Positions 2,424 through 24,940 of a stretch of 64,000 nt of DNA are shown one piece after another. The first letter of the stretch is position 1, and every line of letters begins with the position of its first letter. Position numbers and translations under genes: made by a program. Where the stretch lies: the IMG/VR virus record IMGVR_UViG_3300045971_000577, positions 248,001 through 312,000 of that record. One strand, given 5' to 3'. The notes below the pieces were generated by a model. The model was not told the origin of the DNA and ran no database searches. It worked only from the letters and a program-made list of their open reading frames with translations.

Positions 2424-2429
2424 GATTTC

Positions 2430-2885
2430 TCTATAAAATAGGTGAATGTTTTGCTAATCGATCATCGAGCTATCATCGGACTTCCAGCGGATTACCAATC
2501 CTAAGTCTCAGTATTTGCGCATTTTCCCAACATCCAGCAGGAGATATAGTAAGACAGGAAAGCGGCTCTCGCAGTTTATCTATCTGTTGCAGCATATCCA
2601 CCGGTATATCTCTTTCTTCGCAGGCCTTTACCCGTAAAAAGTGCTATAGGTGGTAAACCCATTCTGACTAACGCATTTACGTGGCGTACACCACAACCTT
2701 GGCTTGATATCAGCTTTCGGGATCTAAGTCATATACGGTATCTAAAGCGAGATACGATGTACATTGTATGGCACATCCATTTCACCACGTACAGCCGGTG
2801 TACACCAACAGTTACCCACTGTCGAAGGATTGAAGTACCTTTACGGTATACCATCTTCAAGTCTTGGTCGGAACAATGTTCCAAA
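2430..2885 (-). ncRNA. Candidate large structured ncRNA (~455 nt) directly downstream of tRNA-Pro
   Basis: No convincing ORF; serial hairpins (TTGAAG/CTTCAA, GACAGT/ACTGTT, GTATCT/AGATAC, GAGATATA/TATATCTC). Confidence 0.55.
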
Positions 2886-2887
2886 AA

Positions 2888-2966
2888 TGGTCTCGGTGGT
2901 GGGATTTGAACTCACATTATTCTTCGCCCCAAACGAAGCGCCATGACCAGATTAGGCGACACCGAG
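2888..2966 (-). tRNA. tRNA-Pro(TGG)
   Basis: Loop TTTGGGG; CCA. Confidence 0.92.
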
Positions 2967-3539
2967 TTTATTCTGAAATTCTATTATATAGTTATTTATC
3001 TTTTCTTCTATCTTTGTAAATAATCCTCTGTGGCAATATGCGTGATGCGTAGGACACAATGGAATCAAGTTTGTAATCGAGTTATTATCTCTGTTGCAAT
3101 CTAAATGATGGACATCTACTGCATCTGTTTCGCCACAAACTACACACTTCTTTTCGTGGTGACTATAGCATATTGTCGAATACTGTGTATATCTTTCTGG
3201 CTTATTTCTTAATTCTCTAAAAAATTTATTCGAGCAACTATGCGAACATGTACCCTTGCTGTGCTTATAATCTTTTATTACATTTTCGCATACAACACAG
3301 TTCTTTGTGTTTGCTGGATTTAGATAACATGCATCCTGATGCTTGGTTCTATTCGGTTCCGATATATTCTTATTGCAAAATATGCAATTTATCTTTTTCT
3401 TATTTACTAAAATCCAGTTGCTCGGTTTGTCAGTTTTCTTATAGCTCAAATGAGCACGAAAGGCCTTTTCACTCTTGTAAACTTTACCATTATTTGGACT
3501 TGTGTATGTCCCATCGATGTTGCGATATTCTTGCATCAA
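2952..3539 (-). CDS. HNH homing endonuclease
   Basis: CVVCGETDAVDVHHLDCNRDNNSITNLIPLCPTHH; CATAAATA late promoter just upstream; 3' end overlaps tRNA-Pro. Confidence 0.9.
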   Translation of the reverse strand: MMQEYRNIDGTYTSPNNGKVYKSEKAFRAHLSYKKTDKPSNWILVNKKKINCIFCNKNISEPNRTKHQDACYLNPANTKNCVVCENVIKDYKHSKGTCSHSCSNKFFRELRNKPERYTQYSTICYSHHEKKCVVCGETDAVDVHHLDCNRDNNSITNLIPLCPTHHAYCHRGLFTKIEEKINNYIIEFQNKLGVA

Positions 3540-3559
3540 CTATTTATGCTCGGAGCATA

Positions 3560-4078
3560 AGTTTTGCACAAATCGCGAACATCGACCATGAATTATTGCT
3601 TGTGTGGGTCTTTCCAAATACACCCTGGTCACTAACGATTCGGCCCCCGGTATGTTTGACGCATCCATGGATGCAAAGTGTTACTACTCACTCGGGCTGT
3701 TTACCGTAAACCCCACAAAACCGCCCAACTCTCGTGTGGCCATGTTGGCGAGACCCCTCTAAAATACGTCGCAAGGATTGACGGGTACACTTTTACATGC
3801 GGTACCGTACATGTGGAATTTGTGTTTCGCTCAGTGTTTTCGACGCACCTTGCTAACGTTTCAACTCACGTGGCAGTTGACTATACCAAAAGTTCGAGCA
3901 TAGTTAAGTATATCTCAAGTAACCCGACGCAGCAGGTTACAACTATTACCCAGTTTAGGAGCTTGGCAACTATTCTCCGCTACGATTTTACACCGCGTGC
4001 CTGGTGCGACTGGACTGGCCAAGGTTTTCACTCCTCGTTTTACCCGGCTTTCCGATCTCTCGGTGCCGCGCCATATTC
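3560..4078 (-). ncRNA. Candidate large ornate ncRNA (~520 nt; GOLLD/ROOL-class by size and context, family not confirmed)
   Basis: GC-richer non-coding stretch with many hairpins (CCGA-GAGA-TCGG, GTAACC/GGTTAC, GCAAGG/CCTTGC, GTTTAC/GTAAAC, GCATC/GATGC) among tRNA genes. Confidence 0.6.
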
Positions 4079-4079
4079 T

Positions 4080-4621: not shown

Positions 4622-4637
4622 ATTATTCTTTTAAAGT

Positions 4638-4759
4638 GTTGTAGCTATCGAAATACATGGGCCCGGTTATCGCTTCGATCACGTCGCAGGACTTTCACCT
4701 ACCCCGATATACCACCTAAATGGTAGTGACCATTACTCCCAACATACATAAACTACAAC
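4638..4759 (-). ncRNA. Candidate ~120-nt structured RNA
   Basis: Closing stem GTTGTAGTT/AGCTACAAC; internal TACCA/TGGTA and GTAGG-TGAAAGT-CCTGC hairpins. Confidence 0.45.
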
Positions 4760-4772
4760 GGTATATTTAGTC

Positions 4773-4828
4773 AGAATGCGTTTTTTCAATTTTACGATTT
4801 GATTATTTTGAATTGCTGAATGCATTCT
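4773..4828 (-). ncRNA. Anticodon-stem-loop-like element, copy 1 (TCGTAAA, Tyr-like loop)
   Basis: TTTCTAA, then stem AGAATGC, ATTCAGCAA motif, inner stem-loop, GCATTCT. Confidence 0.5.
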
Positions 4829-4879
4829 TTAGAAATTTAGACTTCGTAACTGCGTTGTCTATGCAGCTACTATAACACC

Positions 4880-5101
4880 TTACCGGGCTGCTGTCAAATA
4901 GTTCGCCCACATTCTTTTCTTGGCCCAGGGCAGTTCACCGTCCACAGCAAGCCAGGCCGGCTTACCGTCAATAGTGCGATTATCTCTTCCAGTTGTACTA
5001 TAGCAACCATCGAAGCAGTGAGTGGGCGAACCATTCACCTTTTCCCAATTGTGGGTCAACTTACCACAGCATACACATCGTTTACGCATAGTTTCTTTCA
5101 T
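4880..5101 (-). CDS. Hypothetical Cys-rich protein
   Basis: ORF track; CVCC...CFDGC. Confidence 0.6.
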   Translation of the reverse strand: MKETMRKRCVCCGKLTHNWEKVNGSPTHCFDGCYSTTGRDNRTIDGKPAWLAVDGELPWAKKRMWANYLTAAR

Positions 5102-5366
5102 ATTGAATAGAATAGCTAAAGCCGCTTTTTCACCACAAATCCAATACCATAGTACCTACAGAATAAAGATGTATGCTTTATCCCTGCCTATAGTCGAAGG
5201 GCCAATTATTCCCTTACTTTAGCCCTCTGGCCCCCAAATACAGTGGTGACCAATTACGCTAATCGCTGTCTAAACTCCACCTCGGTCGATAACCGAAACT
5301 TGTTCGGGTGTTTCGAGTTCAGTTCAACGTGCTGGTATCGGCGTCGCCGTAGACGCTATTCTAACT

Positions 5367-5471
5367 TGGTGCCATGAGGATGGATTCGAACCATCACATT
5401 CGCTAGCCCGCACCGTTCCTCGAGACTGTTGCGGGCAAAATCACGTCCTCTACCGATTGGGATACTCTGGC
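5367..5471 (-). ncRNA. Atypical tRNA-like RNA with a long hairpin replacing the anticodon loop
   Basis: D-arm TCCCAATCGGTAGAGGA, T-arm GATGG-TTCGAAT-CCATC, ACCA end; inserted GCCCGCA/TGCGGGC stem. Confidence 0.6.
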
Positions 5472-5691
5472 TTATTCAAAATATAGAGGCTCCGGCGCCA
5501 CCGCATTCGCGACACTATTGCGCTTTTTTGGGGTGAAGTAACTTCACCAATACCGGTTTTATGCATATCACTGTATGGAAGGATTTTCACCTACAACACT
5601 GCACCTACTCAATATATCTAATACCATCCGTGGATCGTAGTGTAACATATTTTTTCAATGTCGTTCTGATAATTGAACTACATACATTATT

Positions 5692-7569: not shown

Positions 7570-7644
7570 TGGTGCGTCTGGAGGGAATCGAACCCTCGTC
7601 ATAGGATTTAGAATCCCGTACTCTAACCGCTGAGCTACAAACGC
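7570..7644 (-). tRNA. Amber suppressor tRNA (anticodon CTA)
   Basis: GCGTTTG/CAGACGC acceptor, ACCA; anticodon arm CGGGA-TTCTAAA-TCCTA; anticodon at 7609-7611. Confidence 0.85.
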
Positions 7645-12952: not shown

Positions 12953-13203
12953 GTTTTCAAACTAACCTAAACGAACTGTTTGCATCCGGTAACCCATATG
13001 CGGTGGCAATAGCAGAGAAGATAAAGAATATCGACGATGCGTATGCTAATAAACTCATCACTGCGGATGAAGCTAAAGACCTTCTCAACGATATGAAAAC
13101 GGAAGAAGCATTAGTTGATCTTGCCAACAATTTGCAAATAAAACTCTATGTTCAGCAAACAATCGATAAGTTGATATTTCTTGTCGAGAATGTGATTTTT
13201 TAG
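12949..13203 (+). CDS. Hypothetical protein coupled to the lipoprotein
   Basis: ATGA overlap. Confidence 0.7.
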   Translation: MSFQTNLNELFASGNPYAVAIAEKIKNIDDAYANKLITADEAKDLLNDMKTEEALVDLANNLQIKLYVQQTIDKLIFLVENVIF

Positions 13204-13208
13204 TCATA

Positions 13209-13234
13209 AGAATAGGAACCGAAGTTCCTATTCT
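13209..13234. terminator. Hairpin terminator between convergent units
   Basis: Perfect 11-bp stem with a UUCG loop on the minus strand. Confidence 0.75.
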
Positions 13235-13500
13235 GGATTTTCTGTTGCCAGGCATTCCTGCCCCGTGGTTTACCGCTTTTTAGGCAGCAAGAGCCTCAGT
13301 GTAAAACGAATCATTTGCGTTTACTTTTTGTTTTCTTCGATTTACGGTCGTTGCTCACCGAGCGATAAGAAGCCTACTCAATACCCAGGCGATTCCGGAT
13401 CGGGCCCATAACTAAAACTTCACAAAAGGCTTAGTGGTGGACCCGGGGGGATTCGAACCCCCTTGTTGAATGTCTTTCTGTTTCCTACTTTACGCTGTTA
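13235..13500 (-). ncRNA. ssrA: Circularly permuted (two-piece) tmRNA
   Basis: Acceptor piece (T-arm, CGGGTCC-ACCA ending 13435) lies upstream of the 5' end GGGCCCG (13407); tag ANDSFYTEALAA* at 13280-13318; G3:U70; outer ends approximate. Confidence 0.85.
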
Positions 13501-13620
13501 TTTTCCTTAATTCTGATTCATAATAGTGTAGCAGACCTACAATAGTCATACGATCAAATCTGTTACCGTATCCTAAATGCCGTCTGTAGTAATCAATCTG
13601 TGATTCAATAAATGATTTAC

Positions 13621-18693: not shown

Positions 18694-18767
18694 TGGTAGG
18701 GCTGCAGGGAATCAAACCCTGGTTGACCGGTTAAAAGCCGGATATTCTATCATTGAATTACAACCCC
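18694..18767 (-). tRNA. tRNA-Lys(TTT)
   Basis: Loop CTTTTAA; CCA. Confidence 0.9.
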
Positions 18768-24865: not shown

Positions 24866-24940
24866 TGGGCAGACGGTTAGGAGTTGAACCTAATATATCT
24901 CTTTCACAGAGAGATGTGTTGCCGTTACACTACACGCTGC
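24866..24940 (-). tRNA. tRNA-His(GTG), irregular acceptor stem
   Basis: Loop CTGTGAA; C73 and G-1. Confidence 0.75.

Follow-up and report, generated by a model that had tools for sequence, protein, structure and literature searches.

The window analysed here, a stretch of 64,000 nucleotides, covers bases 248001-312000 of a virus record that is 369,145 bp long and carries direct terminal repeats. The genome encodes a Gp23-type major capsid protein, a gp15-like tail protein and a late sigma factor (G000:C1:326034-326900; phrog_12791, E 3.9e-78), to which T4 gp55 gives a weak tblastn match, and it carries 47 tRNAs and one tmRNA. Taken together, these genes identify the source as a giant T4-like phage. 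In window positions 1-29000, the minus strand holds every gene and tRNA. The tmRNA (13189-13535, minus strand) matches both the permuted (two-piece) and the betaproteobacterial tmRNA models, and its tag peptide is ANDSFYTEALAA. A tRNA with a CUA anticodon, of the amber-suppressor type and labelled Pyl by ARAGORN, is located at 7570-7644 on the minus strand; despite its presence, the ORFs read normally in the standard code (table 11). Two more tRNA matches on the minus strand, at 18697-18767 and 24876-24933, were found by Rfam and are absent from the ARAGORN calls; one is full length at 61 bits and the other is partial (model positions 7-64).

Along the minus strand, the region of interest consists of tRNA-Leu(UAG), block D, a 73-aa ORF, block C, a 92-aa ORF, tRNA-Val, a 57-aa ORF, block B, an HNH-like ORF, tRNA-Pro and block A, which is followed by a 234-aa ORF (2423-1719) and tRNA-Ala. 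Block A, the subject of this work, comprises 464 nt on the minus strand (2887-2424); the preceding tRNA-Pro has a genomically encoded CCA (2890-2888) and is syntenic in at least 17 relatives, and the next gene starts at 2423. The first-pass annotation had placed only the HNH-like ORF and tRNA-Pro between blocks A and B, and the coordinates bear this out. The features are as follows.

5102-5691, minus strand: block D, conserved non-coding, starting 1 nt after tRNA-Leu(UAG)
4622-4879, minus strand: block C, conserved non-coding, ending at the start codon of the 92-aa ORF
3540-4079, minus strand: block B, a separate mosaic of conserved RNA pieces
~4076-3985, ~3890-3810 and ~3740-3585, minus strand: the block B pieces B1, B2 and B3, respectively
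2952-3539, minus strand: HNH-like ORF, a variable insertion (context), with Pfam HNH_3/HNH_2 matches below the cut-offs
2993-3000, minus strand: GATAAATA, a T4-type late-promoter-like motif within the 3' end of the HNH ORF, 27 nt upstream of tRNA-Pro
2966-2888, minus strand: tRNA-Pro (UGG), called by ARAGORN; Rfam tRNA 48.5 bits
2862-2887, minus strand: 26-nt spacer specific to this phage, with U5 and a small hairpin GGAACA-UU-GUUCC, as read from the sequence
2636-2861, minus strand: A5' domain, ~226 nt, nine conserved helices (alignment A3, 18 distinct sequences)
2859-2855 with 2835-2831, minus strand: A5' helix P1
~2828-2807, minus strand: candidate H-type pseudoknot in A5'
2755-2750 with 2743-2737, minus strand: A5' helix P5
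2695-2690 with 2685-2680, minus strand: A5' helix P7
2660-2657 with 2651-2648, minus strand: A5' helix P8
2440-2635, minus strand: A3' domain, the universal core, ~196 nt (alignments A4 and A7)
2633-2630 with 2443-2440, minus strand: A3' closing helix S1, AGGU/ACCU
2612-2606 with 2547-2541, minus strand: A3' helix S3
2535-2516 with 2464-2444, minus strand: A3' long-range helix S6
2424-2439, minus strand: A/U-rich tail from the A3' closing helix to the next start codon
1719-2423, minus strand: 234-aa gene 3' of A3' (context, outside the RNA)

Blocks B, C and D are likewise conserved in relatives and match no Rfam family. Inside block D, a tRNA-like match of 102 nt (5370-5471, minus strand) scores 26.6 bits in Rfam against a threshold of 29 and has no ARAGORN call; it may represent a decayed or interrupted tRNA. 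In a wastewater relative (run X3) that is ~88-90% identical, 44 other letters take the place of the 73-aa ORF (window 4880-5101), another sign that small genes come and go among the RNA modules.

Comparative structure of block A

The relatives were collected stepwise. A search with the 234-aa protein brought up two viral contigs in synteny, in which the non-coding blocks are recognisably conserved at the DNA level. An invariant 20-nt motif of block A then retrieved more members from viral and metagenome collections, and a second motif added six more divergent viral contigs. Members were found with nhmmer profiles in place of a covariance model. Once duplicates and chance hits of the motifs had been removed, the set comprised at least 26 distinct A3' and ~22 A5' sequences, all from metagenomic phage sequences. 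A blastn search of GenBank phages in distant mode gave no block A match, and GTDB genomes gave only chance 20-mer matches. As far as these searches reach, the family is confined, within the collections searched, to one clade of giant T4-like phages whose sequences come from pond, sediment and wastewater samples. Since all of the relatives are syntenic orthologues from this one clade, independent origins are not countable. The element is present in one copy in its own genome.

Block A does not encode a protein. TAA, TAG and TGA all occur in each of the six frames, and the stretch is therefore non-coding under any code. An alternative-code ORF, considered on account of the CUA-anticodon tRNA, was ruled out by these stops. 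The first-pass annotation had read the region as ~455 nt of consecutive hairpins beginning near the tRNA-Pro CCA. The minimum free energy of the minus strand is -120.4 kcal/mol, as compared to a shuffle mean of -119.7 (z -0.14), and the plus strand gives z -0.11; for block B, the two strands give z +0.51 and -0.33. With z close to zero on both strands of both blocks, thermodynamic stability is unusable as evidence. Thus, the hairpins seen in the single sequence are at the chance level, although the underlying proposal of a non-coding RNA held up, as its covariation reveals. On the evidence of sequence alignments, the structure of block A is evident only from the comparison with relatives, among which ~17 helices are kept through compensatory changes, and not from single-sequence folding.

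Profile searches split block A at a single point, 2636/2635, into the domains A5' and A3'. A5' begins 0-1 nt past the tRNA-Pro CCA in 12 of 17 lineages, and the 26-nt spacer is absent from the 12 relatives in which A5' directly follows the CCA. In the present phage, the conserved structure starts from ~2861, 26 nt past the CCA; a start within a few nucleotides, as initially described, is thus correct for most relatives but not for this phage. The A5' alignment of 18 sequences was made with MAFFT on sequence alone. As a control, the 3' partners of each helix were slid by 1-3 columns, which preserves the relatedness of the sequences. The proportion of paired cells is 90.8%, as compared to 34.5-39.8% in the slid controls, and 35 of 45 pairs have changed on both sides (7-14 when slid); the observed pairing values were reached in none of 500 shuffles. 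Within the candidate pseudoknot, helix b is well supported. Helix a, by inspection alone, is seen in five complementary versions, and its register shifts between lineages, so that only 77.8% of its cells are paired in fixed columns.

The A3' domain is more strongly conserved. Its mean pairwise nucleotide identity is 75%, as compared to 64% for the neighbouring coding sequence and 59% for A5'. In alignment A4 (23 sequences), 96.6% of the cells are paired (34.5-46.8% when slid), and 18 of 46 pairs are double changes (1-6 when slid); in alignment A7, which includes the divergent members (26 sequences), double changes account for 23 of 44 pairs. The GAGAUAU/AUAUCUC helix switches from U-A to C-G in nine sequences. 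The long-range helix pairs GGRUGUYGGG... with ...CAARACAYYC, and one S6 pair in A7 occurs as U-A (20 sequences), U-G (2) and C-G (4), with U-G as the intermediate. A further helix, S2, also lies inside the domain. Several near-invariant stretches of A3' are unpaired. The domain also contains the invariant stretches GCGAAGAAAG (2621-2612), UGUUGGGAAAAUGCGCAAA (2532-2514) and UUAGCAAAACA (from 2457). Two peripheral hairpins that are common to most relatives are both missing from this phage. In all of the relatives, the domain ends 7-16 nt ahead of a start codon, and the intervening tail is almost purely A/U.

At the paired positions, G-U cells greatly outnumber A-C cells (75 versus 17, and 80 versus 16), which assigns the structured RNA to the minus strand. 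This strand is also that of the tRNAs, and together with the covariation above the slid controls, the asymmetry upholds the original proposal of a structured RNA. The comparative sequence data indicate that block A is a real structured RNA family, absent from Rfam and previously uncatalogued. A reading without any RNA function would treat the stretch as decayed genes, neutral spacer or a DNA-level site, in line with the folding energies at z ~0 and with the lack of any match to the stretch in runs recorded as RNA. We consider this reading scarcely credible, given that the compensatory changes are far above the controls, G-U pairing is strand-asymmetric, A3' is better conserved than the adjacent coding sequence, and the element is kept in otherwise reduced loci.

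Autonomy of A5', A3' and the upstream blocks

The boundary between A5' and A3' is a site at which genes are accommodated. Nine lineages have one same-strand protein gene exactly between the two domains, and these inserts belong to four unrelated families (QueC-like of 201 aa, 207 aa, 94 aa and 135-167 aa). The QueC-like PP-loop gene, with an SGGFDS motif and 201-202 aa, occupies the junction in the relatives L020, L047, L025, L046 and L072. Moreover, A3' can exist alone: in L077 and L012, A3' is present without A5', and another sequence stands in the place of A5'. A sequence shared by these two relatives (AAATGTGTCC...) replaces A5' at ~790-850 in L012 and at 699-1060 in L077. In L012, the AAATGTGTCC sequence comes after a leftover 3' half of the tRNA-Pro gene. 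It may be an alternative module.

The gene on the 3' side of A3' also differs by lineage: it encodes 234 aa in most relatives, 114 aa in the L020 group, 119 aa in L004 and 121 aa in L076 and L078. The 234-aa protein shows ~50% identity across 25 loci (tblastn) and matches no Pfam or PHROG family. Its predicted model is all-beta and propeller-like (pLDDT 84.9), and a comparison of this model with the PDB gave no match at E <= 0.001. The 234-aa gene is missing in L004, L076 and L078, yet A3' is present there. The loci of L076 and L078 are the most reduced: A5'-A3' directly follows the stop of a 60-aa ORF and directly precedes the start of the 121-aa ORF, and both ORFs are homologous to window genes that lie outside the whole segment. 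These two relatives lack tRNA-Leu, tRNA-Val, tRNA-Pro, blocks B, C and D, and the 234-aa gene. Because it is kept even in these loci, A3', usually accompanied by A5', is the most persistent element of the region.

The order of A5' and A3' is constant, and they remain together even in the minimal loci. This constancy and co-retention leave room for the two to act as one two-domain molecule rather than as two RNAs. A scan for helices between the modules yielded candidates that, at best, were no better supported than noise. One complementarity between A5' and A3', CACCGG/CCGGUG, was dropped, as it is absent in L004 and the L024 group.

Upstream of tRNA-Pro, the arrangement is far less constant. 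The HNH-like ORF, with its sub-threshold Pfam matches (HNH_3, E 2e-4; HNH_2, E 1e-3), overlaps the first 15 nt of tRNA-Pro. A homologue in the same place (48% identity) is found only in the L019 group; the ORF is absent at this position in L002, L003, L004, L054, L045, L046 and others, and L002 has a 96-aa membrane-like ORF instead. Given that its position varies among relatives, the HNH ORF is a mobile insertion, and in this respect the first-pass annotation, which saw it as an invader, was right. In L024 and L002, HNH homologues precede other tRNAs, as expected for homing endonucleases that target tRNAs, like T4 SegB. A second HNH-type ORF in the window, at 1191-1637 on the minus strand, also directly adjoins a tRNA gene. 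At the HNH gene, the DNA contigs over the first 6000 bases yielded no joint that could be used.

Block B is a mosaic, and its pieces B1, B2 and B3 are present or absent in varying combinations beside an intact block A. B1 lies directly 3' of tRNA-Val in L020 and L059. Block B is reduced to B2 in L003 and to B3 in L045; the L019 and L054 groups lack B2 and have B1 joined to B3, and B2-like pieces are repeated in L004. B3 contains a conserved core with some covariation (6 of 16 pairs compensated in nine sequences). In L072, tRNA-Leu is followed by the 3' part of block D, and tRNA-Pro comes next, ahead of A5', the QueC-like gene and A3', which leaves no space for block B; L070 and L077 show no match to block B.

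These arrangements bear on the proposal, made in the first-pass annotation along with the remark that GOLLD RNAs can contain embedded tRNAs, that the two blocks may be a single RNA of ~1 kb split by the HNH gene and tRNA-Pro. In a GOLLD-like molecule of this kind, block B would be the variable 5' domain, tRNA-Pro and the HNH gene the linker, and positions 2424-2887 the conserved 3' domain. The layout, with a variable upstream block, a conserved downstream block and an inserted HNH gene, is indeed reminiscent of GOLLD. However, block A lacks an upstream block in L072, L076 and L078, the upstream pieces assort independently, a late-promoter-like motif lies between both blocks, and neither GOLLD nor ROOL was matched in a search of 1.7 kb at a threshold as lax as E <= 10. 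In L003 and L004, which lack the HNH gene, block B touches tRNA-Pro. The mosaic nature of block B and the occurrence of block A alone thus do not support one ~1-kb RNA, which we regard as very unlikely. The blocks occur separately in other genomes, where A5'-A3' persists without block B, and the alternative that had been offered, two independent non-coding RNAs, comes nearer to the truth, although the flagged block itself consists of two separable modules. Block A very probably consists of two structured RNA domains on the minus strand, each autonomous and with its own boundaries, and both independent of block B.

Proposed transcription and possible roles

The motif GATAAATA occurs 24 times in the window, as compared to 3.4 expected (a seven-fold excess), and 21 of the 24 are on the gene strand, typically 15-35 nt ahead of start codons or tRNAs (e.g., 244-237, 1704-1697, 3000-2993, 21847-21840 and 38190-38183). 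It matches the T4 late consensus. In T4, this consensus, TATAAATA, lies at -13 to -6, and its first T is poorly conserved (PMC1524935). The enrichment of the NATAAATA motif, together with the late sigma factor gene, was counted as support for a promoter. Six relatives have a copy of GATAAATA whose end is 6-7 nt from tRNA-Pro, a distance that would place the transcription start ~1 nt ahead of the mature tRNA. The interval from tRNA-Pro to the 234-aa gene contains no late-promoter motif, and this gene is therefore probably co-transcribed. Sigma-70-like sites that agree at 11 of 12 positions are found ahead of tRNA-Val (site at 4384-4356) and of the beginning of block C (site at 4897-4869). No intrinsic terminator was found on the minus strand. 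As judged from these motifs, a transcription unit likely comprises the late promoter, tRNA-Pro, A5', A3' and the next gene, apart from the unit of tRNA-Val and block B.

We somewhat favour the reading that A5' and A3' are stable trans-acting phage RNAs of the kind of the T4 species 1/2, GOLLD and ROOL RNAs, with A3' as the essential core and A5' as a facultative companion. Transcription would run from the T4-type late promoter by tRNA-Pro, through A5' and A3', into the next gene. The maturation of the tRNA 3' end would create the 5' end of A5', as for the T4 species 2 and species 1 RNAs, and the invariant unpaired stretches of A3' may serve as contact surfaces for a conserved partner. Candidate partners are the ribosome, an enzyme that processes or modifies RNA, and further copies of the RNA itself.

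A trans-acting function is a weak preference, and a cis-acting one, while less probable, competes with it seriously. A3' could be a structured 5' leader that gates or enhances translation or stabilises the mRNA, and A5' its protective 5' cap. The position of A3' throughout the lineages, 7-16 nt short of a start codon and followed by an unpaired A/U tail, fits a leader, as do the probable co-transcription of the 234-aa gene without an intervening late-promoter motif and the lack of Shine-Dalgarno sequences upstream of the phage gene starts that were read; the first helix of A5', within a few nucleotides of the processed 5' end, would suit a cap. However, tight packing is the default in phage genomes, and adjacency alone says little. 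With four downstream gene families, a riboswitch that serves a single ligand and pathway is disfavoured, the known leader and riboswitch models give no match, and ~200 nt of near-invariant sequence, conserved beyond a coding gene, exceeds the needs of a stabiliser. The insertion of ORFs at one fixed internal site, with HNH genes close by, might also recall a self-splicing intron or a known ribozyme whose peripheral loop receives the ORFs. This explanation is highly improbable: there are no exons to join, since the element is flanked by an intact tRNA with CCA and an intact ORF, or by two ORFs (L076, L078), intron and ribozyme models remain unmatched at E <= 10, and the inserted ORFs are metabolic or of no assigned function (QueC-like among them) and not endonucleases.

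A bolder version of the trans-acting reading, which we rate as unlikely, sees in A3', alone or together with A5', a new class of large phage RNA that has its own biochemical role, as an RNA-only assembly comparable to the cages of GOLLD and ROOL or as a decoy or scaffold. The decoy or scaffold option would involve the ribosome or a tRNA-directed host defence and be engaged late in infection, and the whole tRNA island would be an array of RNA modules (A5', A3', B1-B3, C and D) that are shuffled like genes.

Large RNAs in phage tRNA islands are already known, namely the long-known T4 species 1/2 RNAs, GOLLD and ROOL. The present locus adds an RNA family for which the comparative evidence is unusually clean and the module boundaries are well defined. 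The natural 'deletion mutants', with A3' only, A5'-A3' only, or genes between the domains, point to the core piece. At least one phage clade thus handles structured RNA domains as independent units that are reshuffled among tRNAs, homing endonucleases and small genes. Should the RNAs prove stable and act in trans, as we weakly prefer, the family would offer a tractable handle on the roles of tRNA-island RNAs.

Relation to known phage RNAs

Scans of Rfam with cmscan detected only tRNAs and the tmRNA, whether at the gathering score, at E <= 10 on 8 kb, or at E <= 10 on 1.7 kb with laxer filters. The same outcome was obtained in eight relatives at E <= 1, again with no GOLLD or ROOL match. Group I and II introns and small self-cleaving ribozymes were rejected for want of a model match and of flanking exons. 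The known riboswitch and leader classes were rejected likewise, with no Rfam model match and a downstream gene class that is not constant (four families).

The tRNA-island RNAs GOLLD and ROOL share the general setting. In GOLLD, the 5' region is less conserved, the 3' region is universal, linker tRNAs are sometimes present, and the RNAs occur near phage tRNA islands (bioRxiv 10.1101/2024.12.08.627333). The present locus resembles it as a large, ornate multi-domain phage RNA in a tRNA island, with a conserved 3' and a variable 5' part and with tolerance for inserts between the domains. Unlike GOLLD, block A gives no covariance-model match, and its domains can occur apart. Membership in GOLLD was rejected on the model searches, and it was also considered through the co-occurrence of the 5' and 3' domains; block A stands alone in L072, L076 and L078. 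ROOL is a phage and prophage RNA of ~580 nt, often near tRNA islands, with pseudoknots and few invariant nucleotides (PMC5737381). In contrast, A3' has many invariant nucleotides and is found in a single phage clade, and it has no covariance-model match to ROOL.

The closest analogue, judged by gene arrangement, is the order of homing endonuclease, tRNA, species 2 RNA and species 1 RNA in T4. The T4 annotation gives segB, tRNA-Arg, rnaD 1 nt after the tRNA and rnaC 6 nt after rnaD, and the RNAs of the T4 tRNA cluster are processed from one primary transcript of ~1.75 kb (PMC2330249). Block A shares with rnaC/rnaD the placement directly 3' of a tRNA, with an endonuclease gene adjacent and in a T4-like cluster. 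In both cases, a T4-like phage has an endonuclease gene, a tRNA, an RNA at 0-1 nt, and a second RNA directly after it. On the other hand, the T4 RNAs are 119 and 139 nt long, as compared to ~226 nt for A5' and 196-270 nt for A3', rnaC ends in a tRNA-like T-arm that A5' and A3' lack, and the endonuclease is GIY-YIG (SegB) in T4 and HNH-like here. A search of the T4 region with the A5' and A3' profiles (nhmmer --max, E <= 100) gave no match. In the absence of sequence similarity to rnaC/rnaD, the relation is one of grammar, not of membership: the two phages share an order in which an endonuclease gene and a tRNA are followed directly by two RNAs.
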